Of a stretch of 64,000 bases of DNA, positions 14,286 through 31,433 are shown piece after piece. The notes below the pieces were generated by a model, which saw only the letters and a list, made by a program, of their open reading frames with translations, had not been told where the DNA came from and did no database searches. This DNA comes from Trichosphaerium sp. ATCC 40318 (taxonomy: Eukaryota > Protista > Tubulinea): positions 248,001 to 312,000 of the forward strand of contig JALMLS010000353.1 in NCBI GenBank assembly GCA_038496445.1, in the 5' to 3' direction. A program made the translations under genes and the position numbers. Each line of letters starts with the position of its first letter. The stretch's first letter is position 1.

Positions 14286-16029
14286 ATGCAGCTTGTCCTA
14301 CTATTACTATTGTGCCTTGTATGCGGTTGCTATTGTGGTGGCTACCGACCATATGCTACGCGTATTCGTTGCGAGAGAAACCCAAGTCTGTTACAGAGAT
14401 ATTTGGAAAGATGGCAACACGATGATAGCATATTCTTGGTCTCTGGTACCTGCATAATAACAGACTCGTTAACTATTAAACATAACAATGTCAATATAAC
14501 CGATTACAATAACGACGGGTTTATAGTGAGACCCTTGTTTCCAGGTACCTCCAACACAAACCTCTGCGCTACTAGCGGTGAACAGGATGTCAACCGTTTA
14601 TTTTTAGGCTTTGACGTATTTAACGTCCTGGCCGCCAAGCGATTCTCATTAACTGGTGCTTATATTGATGGCAATCTTGGGTTGACCGGGATAAGGGTTA
14701 CACAAAATGGAGATGCCAAGATTTACAATACAGATGTTGTAAACACAACTTTTGGAATATTCGTTGGCGGTTCAAGTAATCTAGCGCTTCACGACGTTAA
14801 TATCACGAGTGCTGGGGTTTTTGGGTTTAATATGGAAGGTTCTTCTTCTGCAGAGGTAACAGGTAAGAAATCACGTGATTACACGAGGTCTCGGGTTTTT
14901 TTGGGATTATCTCGTAAAAACGAAAAAACTTTGTTTGGTTTTTTTGGTAACGTGCTTAGGTTTACTTAGTGTCACTGGAACTCGAGTTTTCGCTGTGAAT
15001 GTAGCAGGGAGTTCTTCATTTACTTTAAGAGAAAGTACGTCGAGAACATTAAGAGGACAATCGTTTTTGCGGTTGTTACATATTTTCTTGCCTTGGAAAT
15101 TGATGGACTTTTTTAGATGCGAGGGCACACCTAAGAAATAATAACTTTGGCTTACAAGTGAGTTCCAGTTCTACTATGCAATTAGAGAACGAAGCTTTAT
15201 TGGATACAAGTAATAACGCTCAACTTGGATTTTCAATAAATACTGGAGCAAGTCTAATCGTCTTTCAATCGACTATAATCAGCAGTGGGTAAGTTTTCAG
15301 TATTAATATTAGTGTTGCTTCTACAAAGGTGCTAGTACTAAAAGAGCAGCGGCGTGGCGTTATAACACAATCGCATTTTTTGTCTAAGTCATTTCAACCT
15401 TCTTTTGTTACAAACAAGTTTGTAATCTATGTACTTTAGGAATGGTCTTGATGGTGCTTCTGTTAGTCTTGGCGGTACAGCATTTGTAGACAATAACGCA
15501 CAGATATTTTTTAATAACAATAACAGAACTGGCTTAAGAATTGAGGTGAGTCTAGTGTTTGTAGTTATTACTTAACATCATTGTTCTTACATTCTTTGTA
15601 GCAAGGTATTGTCCGTGCAAACAACGCTTTCTTCCCAGTAGGACCTCTATTAGAAGCCAAGAATAACTCGAGATTCGGTGTAGAAGTATCCAGACGCAGC
15701 TACCTTGGTACGAATAGAACAGAACAATAAACTCTCTGACTGCTTGATGTTAAAGATTGGGTAACCATAGCATCTAACAGAGGTGTTAATGCTGCGGATA
15801 ACGATGAAGGTAATGTGGTGCTAGATTTATCTTCAATTGGAACATTTGAAAGCTCTTCACTCGATGATATAACGATCGGTTTTATGTCTTTTGCTGAATT
15901 TGAGCAAGACAACAATGGTAAGTTGAATTTTTACTTTTTTCCAAGTTATCCATTGTCTAACATTACTAAGTTGTTGAAATTACTTGTAATGAAGGAGGTG
16001 TAGCTCGTGGAGAATTAGATTGTCCTTAA
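14286..16029 (+). CDS. secreted protein with right-handed beta-helix (pectin-lyase-like) repeats, multi-exon
   Basis: Signal peptide MQLVLLLLLCLVCGCYC; repeated GIRVTQNGDA / GIFVGGSSNL / GFNMEGSSSA / GLQVSSSST / NNAQLGFSINTGAS / NNNNRTGLRIE / NNSRFGVEV motifs typical of beta-helix rungs. Confidence 0.65.
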
Positions 16030-16483: not shown

Positions 16484-18455
16484 ATGCGTAAAGCATCTTG
16501 TCTGGTTTGCCGTAAACGGCATGTAAAATGCAACAGTGAAAGCCCTTGTGGTATTGTAGACGCTTGTTAGCTTTGTAGACTAACTCTACTAGCCAGGTGT
16601 GTCAAATTAAATATTACATGCGTATACGCCGAGCCACAACGTAGAGGAAGGCGTAAGGGTAAGAATTTTAATAAAACATAAAACCAGCGGAGTTTTACTA
16701 AATCAAGTTGAAACGTTACTATTACGTGAAAACACGTTTTCGCCATGGCGTAGCAACGGTATTTCGCAGAAATCATGAGTTTACCGCCCTTTTACACTAC
16801 ATTCTTTCAGAAAACAGCTCACTTTATAGTCAAACGTGGCTCTAATCAATTTATCGATAACCCTGTGAAAACCGAATAATTTTTGTTTTTCTAGGTTCAA
16901 CACTGTCAGTTCTAGAGAAGAAGATTGGTTTCTTGGAGCAATGTATCAAAGATGAAAAACGTCGACAGAGTAACTACAAGACACAGTTAGATCAATACAA
17001 ATCATCTTCATCGAGGCCTAAACGAAGAGCAGATTGTCTAGAGAGTAACGCACGTGTTCATATTTCTTTTAGTTTCACAAAAGCAAAAAAAGTAACTTTG
17101 AGTTTAGTCCGTTTTAGCGACAGCTGACGCGTATCTGGGACGTGCTTGTGAAGTTATTACAAGTATAAATAGTTTTAAAAGCTTCATTGGAGCTGAGCTA
17201 CCTTTATTACATCTACCTATTAAGCTTGAAGAGTTCCACAAGAACGAGAGTGAGTACTTGTTTTTTTGCTTTTTTTTTCGATGTGTTTTTTCTCATTTTT
17301 GTAAGGTACGCCATCTACTTTTCTTGTTTATACAATGCTTGCTTTGCAACAACAGTATTTTGGCAATATAGAAAGAGCAAAAGATCTTGCAAATCATGCT
17401 CAGTTAATGCAGAAAGCAATAAACAAACCATCGTTAATGACAGCAGGTAAAACATTTTATTCCGAAATGTCTATTCGTCTCACGCCTTTACGTAGCTGGT
17501 CTTATTATTCTAGCAGCTTATTTAATTGGCGGATGTGAATCTCTGCATAGTTTGGAGTTAGTAGAATTGGCTGATGACATGTTAAAGCTTAAGAGCGCAG
17601 CGGATAAATGTAAATATGGTACAACCAAAATATTTGTATGTGTACCTTAATTTCTCACTTTGTTGTCTTGTTAGGTCATACGCGCACAGGTGCTTTGTCA
17701 GACGGTATAAATATTCTACGACTACGCCTTGTTTTACATAAAGATGCAACACCCGAACAGTTTATTTTAAACCGTCTTTGGGCCAGGCAACAGCTTCTTT
17801 CTCGCTTAGCTGGTTTGCAAAGAGATATTGATTTTGGTGTTAATTTAGTTGTACTTAAAAAGGTTTATGAGGCTTTACTGGATATAGAAGTACGTAGTTC
17901 AGTGTTTCAAGCTGGTTTCTTAGATTTAAGTAGAGTTCAATGTGGTTACAAACAAAAGATGAATCTCATCGGAATAAATGTTTGGAGTATATTAAAGAGC
18001 TTGAATGTCTTGCAGATGGCATGCCAGAATCACCTGTTTCTCAGTTCACAGCTTATTCGATATGTGCACGTGTATTGGGACAGATGAACTTCAGGGGAGA
18101 GGCGATTAACGTGGCTGAAAAGGGAAAGAATATTACTCCTTTTTTGTTAAATGCCAAAGGAGTCTTTCCTTTTATTGGATTTTGTGCTACTGATACATGG
18201 TCTATATTATATCATAGTGGACGAAAGCATAGTGCTAAAGTATTATCATCTTTTATAGAACCTTTATTTGTTCCTTACCCTTTTGTTGCTCGAGTGTTTC
18301 TTGTGCGTTATTGTTTTCTTAATTTTTTTGGTCTCTTACTTTTTCTTTAGCTTGCTAAGAAGCATGGAGGCACACAATCTATTAATTTTGAAGCGGATCT
18401 TCTTTCTTCTATGACTCCTTTATTGGAGTGTCCTGGCGAAGTTGCAAAGGGTTAA
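16484..18455 (+). CDS. Zn(II)2Cys6 (GAL4-type) binuclear-cluster transcription factor
   Basis: Splicing intron ~16550-16592 gives MRKASCLVCRKRHVKCNSESPCARCVKLNITCVYAEPQRRGRRK = C-x2-C-x6-C-x5-C-x2-C-x6-C, followed by a coiled-coil exon (LEKKIGFLEQCIKDEKRRQSNYKTQLDQYK) and helical exons to TAA at 18453-18455. The cluster is missed by the ORF track. Confidence 0.85.
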
Positions 18456-18703
18456 AGCTGAATGTAACAACGGTATTTATATATTCTGTTAAAATGTAAA
18501 ACTGTAAAAACCTTTCTTTTATTTTCCAAGTGTTCTTGTATTAATATAACAAATGCTTGGCGCTAGAGCCACAAGCCATTTTTTCTTCCTCCCAACAACT
18601 TAGTTTTCCTTCGTTAGTTGATAGAACTAAGAGTGAAAGAACTCTAACTGTAAAATACTTTATTTTTATCCTTTACAGTAGTTGCTTGTTATTTTTTTAT
18701 TGG

Positions 18704-21332
18704 TCACAACAAGCCAAGAAGTGATACAAAACAAAGTAGAGTAAAAACCAAAGTAGGCCACATTGCAGATGCTGAAGAACCAGGAGCAGGTGTCTATTGA
18801 AACCAATAAGAAAAATAAAAGAAACAAAAGGGTAAAAATGAAAGAAGATTGTGTCAAACGTACTACAAAGTCATTACATTTTGCGGCAGTCTGCAATTGT
18901 GCAATAGTAGAAGACCATATCTACAACAAAAATTAGACTTTAAAGAGATACTTGTCTTGCATTGTAATAACTCACGTTTTTTTGTCCTGGTACTGAAGCT
19001 GTAGGACATATTTCAGGAAATGTTATTCCTCCTTTACCACCATTAAGACTACAATCTAATGACATCTAGATACAAACCAGACGTAAGAATGTTACAACTT
19101 AGAAAAAACAAATAAAAAGGTACATACGTCTGGTCTTCCTCCTGGTAATCCAGCAATTGCCAATGGGACAGACAATTTTGATAAATTTGATTCATCCAGT
19201 CCGGCCAGAGTTCCACCAGAAACGATATTTATGTTAAGATCACCATCGTAAGTGCATATTACACAACAAGACATCTCTGCAAGTGCATTTCGGCATTCTT
19301 CAGGGAAAGTATTACCGAGAAGCAGTGGGTCGCTAAAAATAGAACCAACTAGTACATTGTTTACATGTGTAGCACAGTTGGTCTTTGAGTACTACATAGG
19401 GAAAGTCAGCGAGATTTGATTGTGTGTAGTTTATGTAAAATTTTCATTGAAACGTACAGCATCGAAAATACTATAACACTTAGCGCCTACTATTGAAGAA
19501 AGAAGACTATTACTCGAAGAAGCTTCGGCTACGTTTGATCCTGTCTCAAAGGTTTCTGATTGACATGTTCCAGACCCTTGAGTAAAATATCAATATAGTC
19601 TTTGATCTGACTTGTCGTACCACTGCTACCATCACAAAAGCATTCAAAACCAAACCCACAAGTGTCCTCAGAATTATCTAGTATGTATGTTGCATTACAG
19701 GGGTCTCCCTAAGAAAGCTTAACAAGATAGCAAAGAATTCAAACGACTTCGTCAATAATGATGACATACGTATCCGAATTGTTGTACACAAATTCTAGCT
19801 TCACACTCAGCACCATTGCCACAATCAGAATCTCGAAAACAAGTGTCATTCTATTAATAAATATTAGAAAAAGCAAAAAGCAGTCTGTGGTTGGTAAAAC
19901 ATACTACAGATAATGGAGTTTGACATGTTCCAATAGAGCCTGCGGTGGCATTGTTACTGATACATCTCAATTCTTTTTGACAATTACTGTTGTATGCTTG
20001 ATCTGTAATACAAGCCTCACCCTTTATGAAACAATGTCAGACAACTTAGTAATGAGAGAATTTAAATACCAAGTCGGATAGAGTTTTGGATAAACAGACT
20101 GAACTACCACGAATTTGGTAAGGACAATTATCTGATTGACAATCCTCATCACCTTCACATTCGTGTAACTAAACATGCTTTTGTTAGGAGAATGTACACC
20201 TGAGGAAAAGTGCGTACATTTGCCCTCTTGGTTTCGCATTTAAACGTTTTATCATTCCAAAATTCTGTGTTGAAATCACACGATAGCTCAGGATCACCAC
20301 AAACAAACTTCGGTACAGTGTCAGTAACGAAACATTCTTGTGTTCCACAAGATAATTGAGAGCAATCCTACGGGCGATATAAGTATTGTACGAAAAGAGG
20401 TAGTTATGTGGTACCATGCCAGCACATTGGGAAGCAGTACAATTGTTTGATTGACACTCTTCGTTATCAGTACAGTCTTCTCCAATTTGTAAGTTAAAAC
20501 GAGCGCATTTCCCTCCAATACAGTTTCCATTAAAACACTCAATGTCACTGGTGCATGTGTCACCAATACACACTTTCTTGTACTCGCATTTAAGAGTATT
20601 TTGGTTACAGAAAAGAGCAACAGGATTACAATTACGAACTGTCTGTACGAAAAATGTTGGTATTAGCCTGTGACGGATATAGATGTATTTTACGTACTTC
20701 AACTGTATCTTCCATGGCTTCAGATGTACACTCATCTCCTACATTCGCTTGAAAAACAGTTTCTGCGCATATATCTGCTTGATTACAATCAAGGCCAAGC
20801 GCACAATTCTCAACTCTGTATGAAAAGCTAGCATTAACACCAAATGTGTGTTTTATTATGACGTACTCTGCGCATGATTGTCCAACAAGTATTGGTCCAA
20901 CACAAGAGCAGTCACTTGATCCTTGTGTTACACAATGACACTTGTCCTTTGAATCACAAACGTGACTAGAAGTGTGTTAGACGTACAGAAAGCGGGTATA
21001 AGGTGTTTGTTTTAGACGTACGTTTCATTACACTGAGCGCCAGTTGACACTGTAATTTTATCAATACAGCTCCCTTGAATACAAACTTGTGTCTCTACGC
21101 AGCTATCGCATTCTGGAGGTATGCATTTGCCATTGACGCATCTGTACCTCTCATTGGCACTCTTGAAAAAAGTTAGACTACTTTATTGTATCGTTCTTTG
21201 TAGCGTCACCTGTGTTTTGCAGTCGTCGTAGGATGAACACGAGAACGAAGGGTCACAAACATTTGCCAATGAGGTGTAACATAAACAAGTAATGATAACC
21301 AGATAGATGACTGATGGAGTTGTTGTACGCAT
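18704..21332 (-). CDS. Cys-rich secreted, probably GPI-anchored surface protein, array copy 1
   Basis: Signal peptide MRTTTPSVIYLVIITCLCYTSLA; many GxxCxxDxECxxxxCxxxxC modules; C-terminal domain ...EECRNALAEMSCCVICTY...GLPGGRPD; ends TPAPGSSASAMWPTLVFTLLCFVSLLGLL* (small residues then hydrophobic tail, no cytosolic tail). Confidence 0.85.
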
Positions 21333-21768
21333 TGGGTTGTTGTGTTCGTTTTGATTGGAAAAATCACGTGATCGTGTGACCCGGAAAATACCCAAAACAA
21401 AAGATCTTTTTAGGGTAATCGCCCAAAGTAGCTTTTTTTTGCTACAGCGACTGCTATGAGGTCAAACAAGTATGATGATAGAGTCTCTTATTACAGATTA
21501 ATTCATTGTTGTGACTCCGTGTACAGCATTACTGGTACGTATATGATCTAATAACATCCACCGATTATCACTTTTGGGCTTGGGTAGGTTTCGGAAAAAT
21601 AATATCCACGAATACAATGTCCACGGAAAACTTTCCAGAAACCTTGCAAAGCCTTATTGAGATTGATGTTTAACCAAGTATGCAAAGAGATAGCGAGATA
21701 AGTCAATAGGGCGAAGGTTAAAGCCATAAAATACTCCACTACAACTTTATTACAAGACAACTAGCGTC

Positions 21769-24538
21769 TTACATGCAAATTAGTGATACCAAACAAAGTA
21801 GAGTAAAAACAAAAGACATTGAAGATGCTGAAGAACTGGGCGAGCCAGAAATAGGTTCTACAGGTTGATTGGATACAGGTGTAGGTGAGGCAACTGGAGC
21901 AGGTGTCTATTAAAACCAATCAGAAAAAACCCAGAAAAGGGTGAAAAAATGAAAGAAGGTTGTGTTAAACGTACTACAAAGTCATTACATTTTGCGATAG
22001 TACGCACTTGCGCAATATTAGAAGACCATATCTACAACAAAAATTAGACTTTAAAGATACTTGTCTTACATTGTAATAACTCAAAGAGATACTTGGCTTG
22101 CATTGCAAATAACTCACGTTTTTTTGTCCTGGTACTGAAGCTGTAGGACATATTTCAGGAAATATTATTCCTCCTTTACCACCATTAAGACTACAATCTA
22201 ATGACATCTAGATACAAACCAGACGTAAGAACGTTACAACAGTGTTTAGAAAAAACAAAATAAATGGTATGTAGAAAAGCATCAAGCTTGGTACATACGT
22301 CTGGTCTTCCTCCTGGTAATCCAGCAATTGCCAATACAGCGTATAATTTTGATATATCTGATACATCCTGTCCGGCCAGAGTTCCACCGGAAACAATATT
22401 TATGTTAAGAGGACCATCGTAAGTGCATATTACACAACAAGACATCTCTGCAAGTGCATTTCGGCATTCTTCAGGGAAAGTATTACCGAGAAGCATTGGG
22501 TTGGCCAAAAAAGAACCAAAAAGCGCATTGTTTATGAGTGTAGCGCAGTTGGTCTTTGAGTACTACATAGGGAAAGTCAGCGATATTTGATTGCTTAGTT
22601 TATTTTCAGTGAAACGTACAGCATCGAAAATACTATAACACTTAACACCTACTATTGTAGAAAGGAGACCAATACTCGATGAAGCTTCGGCTACATTTGA
22701 TCCTGTCTCAAAGGTTTCTGATTGACATGTTCCAGACCCTTGAGTAAAATATCAATATAGTCTTTGATCTGACTTGTCGTACCACTGCTACCATCACAAA
22801 AGCATTCAAAACCAAACCCACAAGTGTCCTCAGAATTATCTAGTATGTATGTTGCATTACAGGGGTCTCCCTAAGAAATTTTAACAAGATAGCAAAGAAT
22901 TCAAGGAATTAATGATGGCAACAAAGAAAAATTGAACTTCGTCAAACATGATGACATACGTATCCAAATTGTTGTACACAAATTCTAGCTTCACACTCAG
23001 CACCATTGCCACAATCAGAATCTCGAAAACAAGTGTCATTCTATTAATAAATATTAGAAAAAGCAGTCTGTGGTTGGTAAAACATACTACAGATAATGGA
23101 GTTTGACACGTTCCAATAGAGCCTTCTGTGGCATTGTTGCTGATACATCTCAATTCTTTTTGACAATTACTGTTGTATGCTTGATCTGTAATACAAGCCT
23201 CACCCTTTATGAAACAATGTCAGACAACTTAGTAATGAAGTAATTATACGCACCAAGGAGGATGGAGTTTTGGATAAACAAACTGACCCACGAAATTGAA
23301 AAGGACAATTATCTGATTGACAATCCTCATCACCTTCACATTCGTGTAACTAAACATGATTTTGTTAGGAGAATGTACACATGAGGAATGTGCATACATT
23401 TGCCCTCTTGGTTTCGCATTTAAACGTTTTATCATTCCAAAATTCTGTGTTGAAATCACACGATAGCTCAGGATCACCACAAACAAACTTTGGTACAGTG
23501 TCAGTAACGAAACATTCTTGTGTTCCACAAGATAATTGAGAGCAATCCTACACGTGATACATAAGTATTATAGCAGAGGTATGTTATTGGTACCATGCCA
23601 GCACATTGGGAAGCGGTACAATTGTTTGATTGACACTCTTCGTTATCAGTACAGTCTTCTCCAATTTGTAAGTTAAAACGAGCACATTTTCCTCCAATAC
23701 AGTTTCCATTAAAACACTCAATGTCACTGGTACACGTATCACCGATACACACTTTCTTGTACTCGCATTTAAGAGTATTTTGGTTACAGAAAAGAGCAAC
23801 AGGATTACAATTACGAACTGTCTGTACGAAAAATGTTGGTATTAGCCTGTGACGGATATAGATGTATTTTACGTACTTCAACTGTATCTTCCATGGCTTC
23901 AGATGTACACTCATCTCCTACATTCGCTTGAATAACAGTTTCTGAACATATATCTGCTTGATTACAATCAAGGCCAAACGCACAATTATCAACTCTAAAG
24001 GAAAAGCTAGCATTAACAAATGTATGTTTCATTTTTATGTTCCATCAACGAAAAGCGACGTGGCGTACTCTGCGCATGATTGTCCAACAAGTATTGGTCC
24101 AACACAAGAGCAGTCACTTGATCCTTGTGTTACACAATGACACTTGTCCTTTGAATCACAAATATGACTAAAATGTGTTAGACGAGCCGGCGAAACGTTG
24201 ACAGAAAACACGTGTAAAGGCGTACGTTTCATTACACTGAGTGCCAGTTGCCACTGTAATTTTATCAACACAGCTCCCTTGAAAACAAATTTGTGTCTCT
24301 GCGCAGCTATCGCATTCTGGGGGTACGCATTTGTCATTGACACATCTGTACCTCTCATTGGCATTCTTAAAAGAAAGTTAGACTTTATTTCCCTATTTTA
24401 TCTTTGTAACGCCACCTGTGTCTTGCAGTCGTCATAAGATGAGCACGAGAACGAAGGGTCACAAATATTTGCCAATGAGGTGTAACATAAACAAGCAATG
24501 ATAGCCAGATAGACGACTGATGGAGTTGTTGTACGCAT
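21769..24538 (-). CDS. Cys-rich secreted, probably GPI-anchored surface protein, array copy 2
   Basis: Near-identical exon/intron structure to copy 1; ends TPAPVASPTPVSNQPVEPISGSPSSSASSMSFVFTLLCLVSLICM*. Confidence 0.85.
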
Positions 24539-25056
24539 TGAGTGGTTGTATTCGTTTCGGTTGTGGAGATAAATCACGTGACCCGGAAACTACCCAAAAA
24601 AAAAAACTTTTTTAAGGTACTTACCCGAAAGGCTTTCTTTGCTACAGTCGACTGCGAGAATCAAGTACAATAGAATCTCAATTACACGTCACTGTCATTT
24701 AATTAAGTCACTGTTGTGACACCTTTCAGTTTACAACAAGAACGGAAATGATCTAACAGCCACAGACAATCGAATATCAATTTTGGGCTTGAATAGGCTT
24801 ACGGAAATACAATATCCACGGGAAAACTTCCAGAAACCTTCGCAAAGCATTACTGAGATTATCTAACCATACATGCAAAGAGATAGCGAGATAAGGGTCA
24901 AAGGGTGCAGCAAGTATTAAAATATTAGGTATGATTCTTTGGAAAGCAACGATTGTCATGTTTGGTAAAAAACTAGGGAAGTACACGTGGCTATGAGAAG
25001 GTTAAATACATAGAATACTCCACTACAACTTTATTTATTACAAGACAACTAGCATC

Positions 25057-27798
25057 TTACATGCAAATTAGTGATACCAAACAAAGTAAACTAAAAACTA
25101 AAGGCATTGAAGACGCTGAAGAACTGGGTGGGATCAAGTCAGCAATTGGTTCTACAGGTTGATCCGATACAGGCGCAGGTGAGGCAACAGGAGCAGGTGT
25201 CTATTAAAACCAATCAGAAAAAACCAGGAAAGGATGAAAAAATGAAAGAAGATTGTCAAACGTACTACAAAGTCATTACATTTTGAGGCAGTCTGCAATT
25301 GTGCAATAGTAGAAGACCATATCTACAACAAAAATTAGACTTTAAAGAGATACTTGCCTTGCATTGTAATAACTCACGTTTTTTTGTCCTGGTACTGAAG
25401 CTGTAGGACATATTTCAGGAAATGTTATTCCTCCTTTACCACCATTAAGACTACAATCTAATGACATCTAGATACAAACCAGACGTAAGAATGTTACAAC
25501 TTAGAAAAAAACAAATAAAAAGGTACATACGTCTGGTCTTCCTCCTGGTAATCCAGCAATTGCCAATACAGTGTACGTTTCCGTTCCAGATATATCTTGT
25601 CCTATAGTACCACCAGCAACGACATTTGTGTTAATATCACCATCATAAGTGCATATTAAACAGCAAGATATCTCTGCAAGTGCATTTCGGCATTCTTCAG
25701 GGAAAGTTGCTCCGAGAAGCAGTGGTTTGGCAAAAAAAATGCCAAAGAGTGCATCGTTTATGAGTGTAGCACAGTTGGTCTTTGAGTACTACATAAAAAG
25801 ATTAACATTCAGGTTACGATGTCAGCATACCTCTTCGAAATTGCTGAAACACTTGTTGCGTGCGATCTCAATAAGTATAGGGCTGGAAAAGTTTACTTTA
25901 AAGTTTGAACGGGTAGAATCAAAGGATTCTGATTGACAGGTTCCAGACTCTTGAGTGTCTCATTAGTATATAAACAGTTTGTTCTGACTTGTTGTACCAC
26001 TGCTACCATCACAAAAACATGAAAAACCAAATAAACATGGATCTTCAGAGCTACTTAGTACATAGGATGCATTACAAGAATCTCCCTAATAAATCTAATC
26101 AACAAGCCAAAATTTTAAGTTACACATAAAATTAATAAACGCTAAGCTTAACGTACGTATCCAGCCTGTAATTCACAAGATCCAGAAACACAAGTAGCAC
26201 CATCAACACATTCGGAATCTCGAAAGCACTTGTCATTCTATTAAATATTAGAAGTATTCTATTAAGTACATTAACCATTAGAAAAAGCAAAAAGCAGTCT
26301 GTGGTTGGTAAAACATACTACAGATAATGGAGTTTGACACGTTCCAATAGAGCCTGCGGTGGCATTGTTGCTGATGCATCTCAATTCTTTTTGACAATTA
26401 CTGTTGTATGCTTGATCTGGAATACAAGCCTCACCCTTTATGAAACAATGTCAGATAACTTAGTAACGAGTTAATTGACCTCACCAAGGGAGATGGAGTT
26501 TGGGATAAACAGACTACACTGAGAGATTGAATCCTACAATTATTTGATCCGCACTGCTTATCGCTGATACAGTCTTCAAGCTATGTGGTATTTGTTAAAC
26601 AACATAACAATACCTGAGGAAAAGTGCGTACATTTGCCCTCTTGGTTTCGCATCTAAACGTTTTATCATTCCAAAATTCTGCGCCATCAATGCACGATAG
26701 CTCAGGATCACCACAAACAAACTTCGGTACAGTGTCAGTAACGAAACATTCTTGTGTTCCACAAGATAATTGAGAGCAATCCTACGGGCGATATATAAGT
26801 ATTGTACGAAAAGAGGTAGGTTATGTGGTACCATGCCAGCACATTGGGAAGCAGTACAATTGTTTGATTGACACTCTTCGTTATCAGTACAGTCTTCTCC
26901 AATTTGTAAGTTAAAACGAGCACATTTACCTCCAATACAGTTTCCATTAAAACACTCAATGTCACTGGTGCATGTGTCACCAATACATACTTTCTTGTAC
27001 TCGCATTTAAGAGTATTTTGGTTACAGAAAAGAGCAACAGGATTACATTCAAGAACTTTCTGCACGAAAATAGTAATTAGCCTGTGACGGATATAGATGT
27101 ATTTTACGTACTTCAACTGTATCTTCCATGGCTTCAGATGTACACTCATCTCCTACATTCGCTTGAAAAACAGTTTCTGCGCATATATCTGCTTTATTAC
27201 ACATAAGACTACTTGCACAATTCTTAACTCTGGGAAAAGAGTTAATTACACTATAAAAAGTTCCATTAACGAAAAGTGACGTACTCTTTACATGATTCTC
27301 CAAGCAGTATTGGTCCAACACAAGAGCAATTACGTATTACTTGTGGCTCACAGTGGCATCTGTCATTTAAAGCACAAACGTGACTAGTTGTAAGGATAAA
27401 TATACACGAAAGGTTGACTTTTTTTTGCAAAAAATCCACGTGCGTGATAAGAGTTCTCTCACGTAGATATGTTTTAGGCGTACGTTTCATTACACTGAGC
27501 GCCAGTTGACACTGTAATTTTATCAATACAGCTCCCTTGAATACAATTTTGTGTCTCTACGCAGCTATCGCATTCTGGAGGTATGCATTTGCCATTGACA
27601 CATCTGTACCTCTCATAGGCACTCTTGAAAAAAGTTAGACCTTTACTTTGTTGTATCGTTCTTTATAGCCGTCACCTGTGTTTTGCAGTCGTCGTAGGAT
27701 GAACACGAGAACGAAGGGTCACAAACATTTGCCAATGAGGTGTAACATAAACAAGCAATGATAACCAGATAGATGACTGATGGAGTTGTTGTACGCAT
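25057..27798 (-). CDS. Cys-rich secreted, probably GPI-anchored surface protein, array copy 3
   Basis: Same architecture and long identical stretches with copies 1 and 2; several exons more divergent (~25560-26240, 26460-26620, 27180-27390). Confidence 0.85.
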
Positions 27799-28419
27799 TG
27801 AGTGGTTGTATTCGTTTTGGTTGTTTCATCTTCACACGGCTAGTTGCGGAACAGGGTAAATCACATCCGTGTGCGGCAACGCGAAAAAGGTATAGTATTG
27901 TACTGTTTGTGTATAGTAGTTAATACAACCAATGAGTAACAATAAAGTCCGTTTTTCCTTTATTTACTGTTCATCCACGTGATATTCTTCATATGAGCGC
28001 TTACCTGATTTTTTTTAGGGAAGGCAGCGCTAGTACTAATTAAATCGTGCGCTACTTGGTGTTTTGGGTAACTATCCTACTGTAACACCTTGTGTTGTAT
28101 ACTAACTACTAGCACTGGGTGGTAAGGCGTCCTGGAGTACCCATACAACGTGCGCATATATTGTCGAGTTTTGTTGTTTTTTTTGTACAGAACGTTGTTT
28201 TTTGGTTTATGAGGTCTGACTGTTCTTACAAAAAAAATAGAATTGCGAATGAATACTGTTTTTTCTGCAAATACGACTTTTAGTTTTATTCGTTTAGAAG
28301 AACATACGTATGACCACGAGAAAGCGAAAATATCAACAAAAATATGGCATAAATCCTCTTTTATTCTAATAGTACGAAAGAGTAAATTAAAATAGGTTTT
28401 TTTGTTTGCTGTGAGAAAC

Positions 28420-31400
28420 TTAGACGAAAGAAAACCCAGTAATGCAATAAACAAGCGTTGCAACTAACGATAAGCACGTCTTGAGAGCAATACTACTAGA
28501 ATCTACAGGAGCAGTCGGTTCAGTTGGAGCTGCGGTGGTAGGTGCTACTGTAGCTACTGGTGGTAAAGGTGGAACAGGAAGATCAGCTGGCTAATAACAG
28601 GTGAGCAATAGCAACTGATCCAAAAAAAAAAGTTCGTACAGAATACGCTGAACATTTAATGGTATCTTGAACTTGTTGTATTGTTTTTTCCCAAACCTTC
28701 GCACCCAGTTAGAAATATCATTGAACATGGTGTTGTCTTACACTAGTGCTTCCACCAGGGCAAACGTTAGGTATAATCAAGCCACCTCTTCCACTGTTAA
28801 GACTACAATCCAAAGAAGCCTACAGTATTGTTTAGTATGTCAGCTGATGTACTGGTAGTTTGAAGTACATCAGGGCGTGCTCCTGGTATTCCTGAAGCAG
28901 TTATCTTTCTATAAATTGTAGGAAGAGTAGCTATGGTTTGGTTGTTTAGAGAACCACCGGCTACAACGCTTGTCGAAAGAGCACCAGGGTAGGTACACAA
29001 TAGACAACAAGATAAATCAGCAACAGGGTTTTTACAATCTTCAGAGATTCTATCAATAGTACGTAAACTGCCTTGTACCAAAGCGCCGAATAGAACTTGA
29101 GAAATTTCATCAACACACTTTGTGATAGCATACTAAAATACAGCTAAGAAAAGCAAAACCAATAGACACAACACTATTTTCAAGAGCAATCTTGTTTCGT
29201 ACTTGTGCGTAGGTAGGGAAGCAATCATTTCCCAGAACTTGAAACAAAACACCAACAGCTAAGCTTGCATCACTTGTTGTTGATGAAGGCATAATTTCTG
29301 GTTGACAACTCGCAGTAGCTAATAATAACGTTAGAAGAAAAACTAGTATAACAGATGTTACCATTTGTATTATCTCCAGCCTCACAAAAGCATCTATTAG
29401 AACCAGTAAGATCACAAAAGTCTCTAGAATCTTCCAACACATATGAAGCATTACAGGGAGCTCCCTATTCACAGATGTACTAGTTACTACAAGTTCAAAC
29501 TGTTTAAATAACGATACCATTACGCAAACATCAGTGCCATTACAGACAAGACCTAACTCGCAGTCGCTTAATCTGAAGCAAGACATATTCTGTTGTAGTT
29601 ATTATTAGCACTAACGTCTTAAAGCGAAGAGCTATACGTACCGCTGAGCGTGGTATTTGGCAAGTTCCACGTGTTATTGTTCTGTTTTCGCTTATACACG
29701 TGAGACCTTTTTGTTACAGAACGACTTAGAGTGGTTGAGGTCAGTAAATAGCAGTACCTTGAGCGCAGCTTGACGAAGCATCTGTTTGAGAACATGGTTC
29801 TCCCTGCAATGTACTTTAACCGTAATGAAAAAAAAAAAACAGTTAAGGACACGTACCGATGCACCTGGTGTCGTTGATAGACAAATGCTTCCTGAATTGT
29901 CAAAATCAACGCAGATGTCTGAAAGGCACTCATCATCAGAATCACATTCTTGCTTCTAAAACAAAAAAAACAGTCTTAGTATGCATAAAGAAAAAAAAAG
30001 GTATTTTATGAGTCTTTATAGTCAAAGAAGTTTGAAGTAGGCGGGTACTGTTCTGGGGGAGAGTACAAAATTTACGAAACATAAGATCTTACTTAAGTAT
30101 GATAGCTGCTTAAAGAAAAAGCCAAAAGGGGAACAAAAATTCTTTTACAAATCTGTCACGTACGTCAGCTCTCTTGGCTTCGCATCTCTTAGAGCTATTG
30201 TGAAACTCTTCACTCTGTTTACAAGAACCTTCTGGATCACCACAAACAAATGTTGGGTCATTTCCTGACGAAGCAAAGCATTGTTCGTCTGCTGCACAAG
30301 CTAGTTGACTACAGTCCTAAGCGATTTTAGTAACTGCTTGCAAGTTCTGTGCTGTAACAGAATAACATGATATCATACCAATCCAATGCAAGTGTTAGTG
30401 GTGCTAGAGCAGTTCTCTGAGTTACATTGTGAAGACTCTACACAAGCTTCACCAAAGTTTAAGGAAACAGCTGCACATTCTCCTTGAATACATTTTGATG
30501 TTAAGCAATCGCTGTCTTTTTCACAAAAATCACCGAGGCATACTTTTTTGAACTGACATTTCTCAGTAGTTTCGTTACAAGAAAGCGCAATTCTATTGCA
30601 ATCGAAGACTTCCTAAAATTTAATGAATTGGAATTCGAAAAGAAAAAATTCAGAAAGCCGTACAGCGATTGTTTGTGTTTGATTCTCTGGAGTACATTTA
30701 TCTCCAACATTACCTTGAAGTATTGTTCTTGAACATATATCAGCTTCATTACAATCCAAACCAAATTCGCAGTTGTCAATCCTAGAAAATGTTAAGACTC
30801 TCCTTGCCTAACAAAAAAACAACTTAGTTGCTATTCATACTCTTCACAAGATTCTCCAAGTCCGATTGGGCCAACACAAGTACAGTTTACCTTGCTGTTA
30901 TCAGGGCAGTAACAATCATCTTCCTCTTTGCAAACATGCCTACACAAGTCATTAAAAACTAGCGAACCAAAAGACATTTCTAGGTTGCGTACGTAGTGTT
31001 GCATGCAGCGCTTGTTTCCACAGTTACCGTATCAACACAAGTGCCTTCTACGCAAACTTGTGATGTTGCGTTGCACGTATCGCATTCTGGAGGTACACAT
31101 TTACCTGCGACGCAACGATATACTGCTGCATTACTCTAAAACTTTCGTTATTGACGCTGAATGCGAATTTGACCAAAAGCCGTTGTAAAACAATAAATAA
31201 CGCTCAAAATACGCTTTGCTTACGCGTAGAATACAAGTTGTACACAATTAATTCGCTAGCGGTTGTTTTTAATCAAAACTACTGTATTTGGCTATACTAG
31301 CGCGTTTACGTACCTGTGAGAGGCAGTCTGATTGCTTAGAGCATTCAAAGGATGGGTCGCAAACGTTGATTGCATTACAGCGTAGCAAGCATACTGCGAC

Positions 31401-31433
31401 AGCAAATAACAAAACCAAGGTGTTTTGGTACAT
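28420..31433 (-). CDS. Cys-rich secreted, probably GPI-anchored surface protein, array copy 4 (old, divergent paralogue)
   Basis: MYQNTLVLLFAVAVCLLRCNAINVCDPSFECSKQSDCLSQ matches NVCDPSFSCSSYDDCKTQ of copies 1-3; CIPPECD, CVGPIGLGESCEE, FVCGDPE, DCKNPVADLSCCLLCTYPG and GIPGARPD conserved; Pro/Thr stalk and hydrophobic C-terminus. Confidence 0.8.

Follow-up and report, generated by a model that had tools for sequence, protein, structure and literature searches.

The window analysed here, a 64,000-nucleotide stretch of the genome of Trichosphaerium sp. ATCC 40318, carries at positions 18704-31433 a tandem array of four intact genes, all on the minus strand, which encode Cys-rich proteins of 619-645 aa from 15-16 exons each. 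We consider it fairly probable that they belong to a lineage-specific family of surface-coat, test-attachment or adhesion proteins, probably GPI-anchored, and that the exchange seen between copies is a by-product of the tandem layout rather than programmed variation. The four genes are as follows:

18704..21332, minus strand: c1, 15 exons, 619 aa, intact, with the stalk down to about 10 residues (coordinate-based model)
21769..24538, minus strand: c2, 15 exons, 634 aa, intact; the reference model
25057..27798, minus strand: c3, 15 exons, 634 aa, intact; a mosaic carrying old diverged cassettes
28420..31433, minus strand: c4, 16 exons, 645 aa, intact; it diverges most from the others and has exon 8 cut by an extra intron

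In these models, which were built from coordinates, all four reading frames are open and 100% of the introns (42-208 nt) are GT-AG, and the tandem unit measures 3.1-3.3 kb; the donor of c2 exon 11 was set by comparison with c3 and c4 and with the transcript peptide P0001. The original prediction of four same-strand paralogues is thus borne out. It had also described three near-identical copies and one divergent copy, of which the divergent c4 stands (about 45% aa identity to c1-c3), whereas only c1 and c2 are close to each other (90.7%), c3 being 78-79% identical to either. P0001, a peptide of the MMETSP0405 set from Trichosphaerium sp. ATCC 40318, matches the paralogue K2 (C36:~183k) at 100%, exon by exon, and lacks introns at positions homologous to those of the gene models; this match ties the genome to that organism, confirms the splice pattern and shows that K2 is expressed. 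The ORFs flanking the array, which hold one PARP domain and one weak NosD-like match, gave no functional link to it.

Two short contigs of the assembly, C340 and C542, are near-identical to parts of the array region or its relatives, diverging by 1-3% only, and one of them repeats a stretch of the window:

17974..22269, no strand assigned: the c2 3' end, the spacer, c1 and a 730-bp flank, present in a second copy on C542 at 97% identity

Such uncollapsed near-duplicates, together with the collapse step for heterozygous regions in the genome paper (PMC10521059), would fit an assembly artefact in which haplotypes of one gene were laid out wrongly in tandem. However, the copies in the array differ by 9-55% in protein sequence, against the 1-3% of the near-duplicate contigs, and have different intron lengths and intergenic spacers, while C542 carries, independently, the same passage from the 3' end of c2 into c1. 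Haplotype mis-assembly is therefore extremely improbable, and it was rejected because the divergence between copies far exceeds that of the near-duplicate contigs.

All four proteins share one layout, with a predicted signal peptide, about ten small four-Cys modules, a predicted helical Cys-rich domain of about 150 aa, a Pro/Ser/Thr stalk and a terminal hydrophobic tail. The corresponding parts of c2 are given here:

24416..24538, minus strand: exon 1, with the start codon, predicted signal peptide and first Cys pair (hydropathy and sequence reading)
22783..24365, minus strand: exons 2-10, a string of small four-Cys modules, exons 5-9 being phase 0-0 (sub-threshold EB, DUF7107 and Dickkopf matches)
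23594..23821, minus strand: exon 5, 76 aa with 12 Cys and both strict G..C..D..C....C modules; the exon used for folding
21975..22738, minus strand: exons 11-14, a Cys-poor linker at the start of exon 11, then the predicted helical domain, close to the membrane and with 9-10 Cys (alignment)
22299-22562, minus strand: exon 12, the conserved core of the predicted helical domain
21769..21906, minus strand: exon 15, the Pro/Ser/Thr stalk, a small-residue run as candidate omega site, and 16 hydrophobic residues that close the protein without a cytoplasmic tail

Each protein has only two hydrophobic segments, at the extreme N and C termini. At the N terminus, hydropathy and sequence reading agree with the signal peptide expected on each copy: in c1-c4 a charged N-region leads into a hydrophobic core of 15 residues, and small residues lie ahead of the first Cys module. 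At the C terminus, the last 16-19 residues are hydrophobic up to the stop codon, with a Ser/Ala/Gly/Asp run just upstream (in c1-c4 and P0001), and the predicted tail without a cytoplasmic part is confirmed in that zero residues follow it. The stalk, which was predicted for each copy, is found in c2-c4 and is almost deleted in c1. The genome encodes the GPI transamidase subunits Gpi16 (PF04113) and Gaa1 (PF04114), both above Pfam cut-offs. From these features, the proteins are most likely GPI-anchored on the outer face of the plasma membrane.

Cys residues number 67-68 per protein and make up about 10.8% of the mature chain; their spacing is kept even in c4, the positions being invariant among members just 45% identical. 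The majority of modules occupy their own exon in phase 0-0. A string of GxxCxxDxxCxxxxC modules had been proposed; many small Cys modules are indeed present, mostly on separate exons, but each protein shows the strict motif at only two places, both within exon 5, and the remaining modules follow a looser four-Cys pattern. The larger Cys-rich domain proposed beside them corresponds to the predicted helical domain of exons 11-14.

As to the identity of the small modules, no family reached its cut-off when single exons, P0001 and 66 exon pieces were scanned against Pfam, and the only matches were sub-threshold ones to Cys modules. EB (PF01683) scored 17.3 bits on P0001 against a cut-off of 24.3, with E <= 0.1 in 9 of the 66 pieces (best 0.00046), and for DUF7107 (PF23416) one exon piece scored 18 bits where 24.6 are required, with E <= 0.1 in 5 pieces (best 0.0021). 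Dickkopf_N (best E 0.002), DIKK C-subdomain 1 (0.027) and colipase (0.055), found in 1-3 exon pieces each, likewise missed their curated cut-offs. An AF2 model of c2 exon 5 (mean pLDDT 73.6) matched the Dkk1 CRD2 best (Z 4.0), followed by knottin-like peptides and colipase, all weakly, and reached Z >= 2 for only 6 of 48,161 chains, every one Dickkopf/colipase-type or knottin-like. The structural neighbours of two independent models were the Dkk4 N-terminal region (Z 5.7), colipase (4.4), Dkk1 CRD2 (4.0-4.2) and draxin, again weak and over 52-58 residues, and in Foldseek searches with the models every E-value exceeded 0.1. The language-model hints and the sub-threshold Pfam hints agree on the same EB/DUF7107/Dickkopf/colipase set. 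The small modules may thus bear a weak, below-threshold resemblance to these families, the likeness lying in small disulfide-held modules with a G-x-x-C-x-x-D-x-x-C-like start. However, the Dickkopf/colipase proteins are short secreted signalling proteins or cofactors, whereas the Trichosphaerium proteins carry a long module string on a GPI-type amoeba protein.

The helical domain gave fewer leads. Helices are predicted in the paralogue P0001 by a model that is confident for part of the domain length only and poor overall (mean pLDDT 47.9); its alignment input was restricted to exon-12 rows, since MAFFT misplaced rows in mixed exon-fragment alignments. A structure search with this model returned only generic helical matches for the C-terminal domain, and the ESM Atlas gave nothing usable for it and lead-level matches only for the modules. 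Database searches and folding used exon pieces and P0001, and the joined spliced proteins served only local descriptive scripts. Word searches with exon 12, P0001 and the exon-5 ORF as queries had P0001 itself as their sole match, PDB sequence searches gave nothing or chance matches at E > 0.1, and a profile search of 1.84 billion representative proteins found no relative outside this genome. Profile scans of viral and metagenome contigs likewise found no relatives of the family, and a giant-virus origin is thus without support. By these searches, the predicted helical domain is an orphan with no relative outside this genome, and the four genes belong to a small lineage-specific family seen in Trichosphaerium only. 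The proposal of a secreted, GPI-type, modular Cys-rich surface family outside any named family is supported by the terminal segments and by the Pfam, word and protein searches.

The same structural features bear on a second reading, in which the proteins are building blocks of an extracellular test or matrix that receive a GPI signal and later become part of the fibrous cover by release or cross-linking, like fungal GPI wall proteins, with a structural role and no receptor function. Trichosphaerium bears a fibrous test (PMC10521059), and the modular Cys-rich layout, the probably glycosylated stalk, the N-glycosylation sequons conserved in the family proteins and the rigid Cys scaffold under purifying selection would all suit such a role. 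However, the Pfam scans matched no known matrix or wall-protein family and detected no carbohydrate-binding domain, and we regard this reading as conceivable but doubtful.

Within c1-c3, the closest partner changes along the gene, and this mosaic is significant, with 119 runs observed against 245 +/- 8.6 expected, a value reached in 0 of 10,000 permutations. The mosaic indicates gene conversion, and the run test thereby bears out the segment exchange among copies. The C542 copy of c1 carries a c2-like exon 7/intron 7 tract, and the gene number differs between contigs, with two on C28 against one on the short contig C340. Variation gathers in exons 3, 7 and 9-11, whereas exons 5, 6 and 8 are kept alike, and c3 holds an old diverged cassette:

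25831..26237, minus strand: exons 9-11 of c3, introns included, with 64-77% nt identity to c1 and c2 in exons and introns alike

The array had been read as a diversifying recognition or variant-antigen system. In such a system the copies would be alternative surface identities (self/non-self, mating or prey), with gene conversion shuffling cassettes and perhaps one copy expressed at a time. The partner switching, the exchanged tract on C542, the difference in copy number and the gathering of variation in certain exons all favour it, and so does the presence of one paralogue (K2) of about ten in the public transcriptome-derived protein set, which is a hint and would also fit selective expression. 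However, pairwise dN/dS stays at 0.16-0.70 throughout, with 0.44-0.47 for the diverged cassettes and 0.16-0.26 for the near-identical extra contigs, which themselves differ little. The family is under purifying selection, and the diversifying selection that the original prediction implied finds no support in any pair, the diverged cassettes included. The introns of the c3 cassette have diverged to the same degree as the exons, so that its distance from c1 and c2 is a sign of age, not of selection. Local diversifying selection is possible in a few short exons, where dN/dS lies near, at or above 1 on very few changes; site-level selection tests have low power with so few sequences.

Family size also bears on this reading. 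A whole-genome profile census found 12 places (11 strong and one divergent), two of them near-duplicates, which leaves about ten distinct loci rather than the large variant repertoire expected of an antigen system. In addition, Trichosphaerium is a free-living amoeba, hence no host immune system would drive antigenic variation. The recognition or antigen reading is thus weakly supported, and we consider it unlikely. As for the broader proposal of a polymorphic surface family, a GPI-type modular surface family with segment exchange is upheld, while the small number of loci, the dN/dS values below 1 and the missing hallmarks of VSP and Tgr proteins lend no support to the diversifying part. A more elaborate version is a compact surface-identity system of about ten GPI proteins with a fixed disulfide scaffold, in which cassettes (exons 3, 7, 9-11 and part of 12) would be swapped by gene conversion and usually one protein expressed for mate, kin or prey recognition, the orphan helical domain being a new fold; this we judge quite improbable.

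Four known systems offer comparisons. First, the immobilisation antigens of the ciliates Paramecium and Tetrahymena are GPI-anchored proteins of free-living protists with about 10% periodic Cys, encoded by a multigene family whose hallmark is mutually exclusive expression. The Trichosphaerium family resembles them in its free-living protist host, GPI-type anchor, periodic Cys content of about 10% and multigene nature, but no search found sequence similarity, and the antigens have no counterpart of the C-terminal helical domain. Second, the Giardia VSPs are also Cys-rich protist surface protein families, but they contain numerous CXXC motifs, are anchored by a transmembrane helix that ends in a short conserved cytoplasmic tail, and are encoded by hundreds of genes; each protein of the Trichosphaerium family, with its roughly ten genes, shows two-residue Cys spacing at only two places and ends with the hydrophobic stretch, so that the layout does not support the suggested VSP analogy. 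Third, Dictyostelium TgrB1/TgrC1 are likewise amoebozoan surface glycoproteins from adjacent genes. However, Tgr proteins are IPT/TIG-repeat, transmembrane and highly polymorphic, whereas the near-identical Trichosphaerium contigs diverge little and IPT/TIG is not among the Pfam matches listed for the exon pieces or P0001, so this analogy is not supported either. Fourth, Entamoeba lectin gene families are reported to undergo gene conversion among paralogues (PMC3125142), and the Gal/GalNAc lectin intermediate subunit Igl shares with the present family its amoebozoan origin and Cys-rich GPI-type surface proteins; Igl is, however, a CXXC-rich subunit of a parasite's lectin complex, whereas two-residue Cys spacing is rare in the Trichosphaerium family and no homology was detected.

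Returning to the surface-coat, test-attachment or adhesion family that we favour, the proteins would be secreted, heavily disulfide-bonded glycoproteins held by a GPI anchor on the outer face of the plasma membrane. Their modules would form a stiff rod of Dickkopf/colipase-type build projecting from the membrane, and the layout suggests that the proteins may serve as components of the surface coat, of test attachment or of adhesion. Gene conversion and unequal crossing-over would be side effects of the tandem layout, with no programmed variation.

Protists commonly have lineage-specific surface families of Cys-rich, GPI-type proteins, and the kind of family described here is familiar; it is set apart by having no detectable relative in very large protein, viral and metagenome collections and by its orphan helical domain. 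It opens no long-standing question at present. The array does provide a clean small case of tandem-array evolution by gene conversion, unequal crossing-over and a possible ectopic copy. In Trichosphaerium, an amoeba that is little known, has a puzzling life cycle and bears an organic test, the family supplies defined candidates for proteins of the cell surface or of the test.

The window is AT-rich (G+C about 37%) with abundant introns, and it derives (C28:248001-312000) from the eukaryotic assembly G000, the size of which, 70.3 Mb, agrees with the roughly 70.87 Mb of the published Trichosphaerium draft genome (PMC10521059). A unit of 3.1-3.3 kb is present three times at 18.7-27.8 kb of the window, and tblastx revealed a fourth, diverged unit adjoining these repeats. 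A 15-exon model of c2 was obtained by base-by-base reading, and the models of all four paralogues, c1-c4, were then set from coordinates alone:

21332..18704, minus strand: c1, 15 exons, 619 aa
24538..21769, minus strand: c2, 15 exons, 634 aa
27798..25057, minus strand: c3, 15 exons, 634 aa
31433..28420, minus strand: c4, 16 exons, 645 aa

All frames are open and all introns, 42-208 nt in length, are GT-AG. The original prediction had placed the array at 18704-31433, which are exactly the limits of these models.

Hydropathy analysis of c1-c4 showed only two hydrophobic segments per protein, i.e., an N-terminal signal peptide and the last 16-19 residues, the latter ending each chain with no residue beyond. 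Between these two ends, exons 1-10 encode about ten small four-cysteine modules (exons 5-9 being phase 0-0), exon 11 starts with a Cys-poor linker, and a larger domain with 9-10 cysteines occupies the last part of exon 11 together with exons 12-14. Ahead of the hydrophobic C-terminal end lie a Pro/Ser/Thr stalk, shortened to about ten residues in c1, and then a run of small residues. The strict motif GxxCxxDxxCxxxxC, originally described as recurring along the chain, occurs twice per protein, in exon 5, while the other modules fit a looser pattern. Cysteines account for about 10.8% of the residues in the mature chain, and their spacing is unchanged in c4 despite only 45% identity to c1-c3. Genes for Gpi16 and Gaa1, subunits of the GPI transamidase, are present in the genome, which makes a GPI anchor feasible.

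Whole-genome searches with single exons and with profiles located the family in 12 places, as follows:

The window, minus strand: four places, c1-c4
C28:232-238k, plus strand: two places, U1 and U2, 10-16 kb upstream of the window
C36: three places
C36:182622-184462, minus strand: K2, one of the three on C36 and the locus of the public transcriptome peptide P0001
C340 and C542, short contigs: one place each
C9:~144000-146800 (144-147k), plus strand: a divergent member, read directly

The C340 and C542 genes are near-duplicates of U1 and c1, respectively (98-99% protein identity), so that the number of distinct loci is about ten rather than 12. In the C9 member, equivalents of exons 2-13 are recognisable and the core motif of exon 12 is kept, with exon 12 apparently split. 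In the family tree c4 is the longest branch, though it lies physically beside c1-c3. Word searches with exon 12, P0001 and the exon-5 ORF found no relative outside this genome, and no family relative was found among PDB sequences, viral contigs or JGI metagenome contigs. Two further ORFs lie on the plus strand of the window: one at 489-1097 matches a PARP catalytic domain (E 5.5e-11) and has no relation to the array, and one at 14286-14969, with a weak NosD/beta-helix-type match under the cut-off (E 9e-4), may represent a further gene for a secreted protein, lying between the family's two clusters on C28.

Database and fold queries were made with single exons or P0001, the joined spliced c1-c4 proteins serving for local translation, identity and dN/dS. 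An exon-12 profile built from ten paralogues (alignment A1) and scored against 1.84 billion representative proteins gave a single match (E 9e-30), P0001, which is peptide CAMPEP_0168513800 of MMETSP0405 from Trichosphaerium sp. ATCC 40318. P0001 lacks the 5′ part of K2 and is otherwise 100% identical to it in every exon, with introns spliced out at positions homologous to those of the c1-c4 models, the longer form of exon 11 included. This exon-by-exon match identifies the genome as that of Trichosphaerium sp., confirms the splice pattern for one family member and, as P0001 is a transcriptome peptide, demonstrates expression of at least one of the genes. Neither the 1.84 billion representative proteins nor word searches with P0001 and the exon-5 ORF yielded a transcript-derived protein of c1-c4. 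K2 alone among the roughly ten paralogues has a counterpart in the public collection of transcriptome-derived proteins, owing either to selective expression or to shallow sampling.

Identities computed segment by segment show that the nearest partner among c1-c3 changes along the gene: c1 is closest to c3 in exons 1-2 and again from intron 12 through exon 14, and closest to c2 in exons 3, 7 and 9-11, while exons 5, 6 and 8 are similar across all three. In a runs test, 454 informative sites fell into 119 runs vs. 245 ± 8.6 expected, and none of 10,000 permutations attained the observed number. In the diverged parts of c3 the introns are as divergent as the exons (64-77% identity), indicating that these cassettes are old and that the similar parts are conversion tracts.

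Two near-duplicate contigs bear on the array and its upstream relatives. C542 carries a 4.3-kb copy (97% identity to the window) that runs from the 3′ end of c2 through the spacer and c1 into 730 bp of flank, and in which c1 has exon 7 and intron 7 of c2 type. Outside this copy, C542:1-16090 is collinear with C191:66001-76000 at 96-98% identity, and the window-derived 4.3 kb stands in place of 1.45 kb of C191. C542 would be accounted for either by a recent ectopic duplication carried by a single haplotype or by chimeric joining of the contig, and under either origin it independently shows the c2-c1 junction. C340, compared over 17001-27000 with C28:229001-248000, is collinear with C28:229-242k at 96-98% identity and holds one family gene vs. 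two (U1, U2) in C28, a difference that fits unequal crossing-over or allelic copy-number difference. That c1-c4 are themselves haplotypes mis-assembled in tandem is very unlikely, because their proteins differ by 9-55%, compared with 1-3% for the near-duplicate contigs.

Across the whole CDS, dN/dS is 0.42-0.59 among c1-c3 and 0.28 for c2 vs. c4; it is 0.44-0.47 in the diverged cassettes of c3, 0.16-0.70 for eleven pairs over four well-aligned exons, and 0.16-0.26 for the near-identical contig pairs. Values of at least 1 are limited to short exons with very few changes. These ratios point to purifying selection that is moderately relaxed and acts on a fixed disulfide scaffold, and not to gene-wide diversifying selection. 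The array had been proposed to be a diversifying recognition or antigen system; with only about ten distinct loci instead of a large repertoire, no gene-wide dN/dS above 1 and no high polymorphism to support it, we consider this improbable.

The small modules gave only sub-threshold Pfam matches with single exons, P0001 and exon pieces (among 66 pieces: EB 9, DUF7107 5, Dkk C-subdomain 1 3, Dickkopf_N 1, colipase 1). The c2 exon 5 model (family alignment A5; mean pLDDT 73.6) matched only 6 of 48,161 chains at Z ≥ 2 in an all-against-chain structure comparison, led by Dkk1 CRD2 (Z 4.0 over 52 residues) and followed by the Dkk4 N-terminal region, draxin, a conotoxin, LEAP-2 and a spider toxin. 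The Foldseek matches were knottin-like toxins, colipase and Dkk1, all with E above 0.001. Residues 109-176 of the P0001 model resembled Dkk4 N (Z 5.7), colipase (4.4), Dkk1 (4.2) and draxin (3.8), and a language-model search reached Dickkopf_N/EB/DUF7107 clusters at 0.84-0.86, i.e., at lead level only. Because these separate weak signals agree, the modules may be described as Dickkopf/colipase/EB-like, without assignment to any of these families. The C-terminal domain, modelled with adequate confidence only at P0001 residues 228-283, is predicted to consist largely of helices plus a single hairpin; structure comparison gave it only generic neighbours (Z ≤ 4.2), and it remains an orphan.

The evidence best supports a family specific to this lineage, whose secreted, rod-like, Cys-rich glycoproteins lie on the amoeba surface and are probably held there by a GPI anchor. 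Such a family would have grown by tandem expansion, with gene conversion homogenising or shuffling the copies, and its layout suggests that the proteins may serve in the coat, in test attachment or in adhesion.
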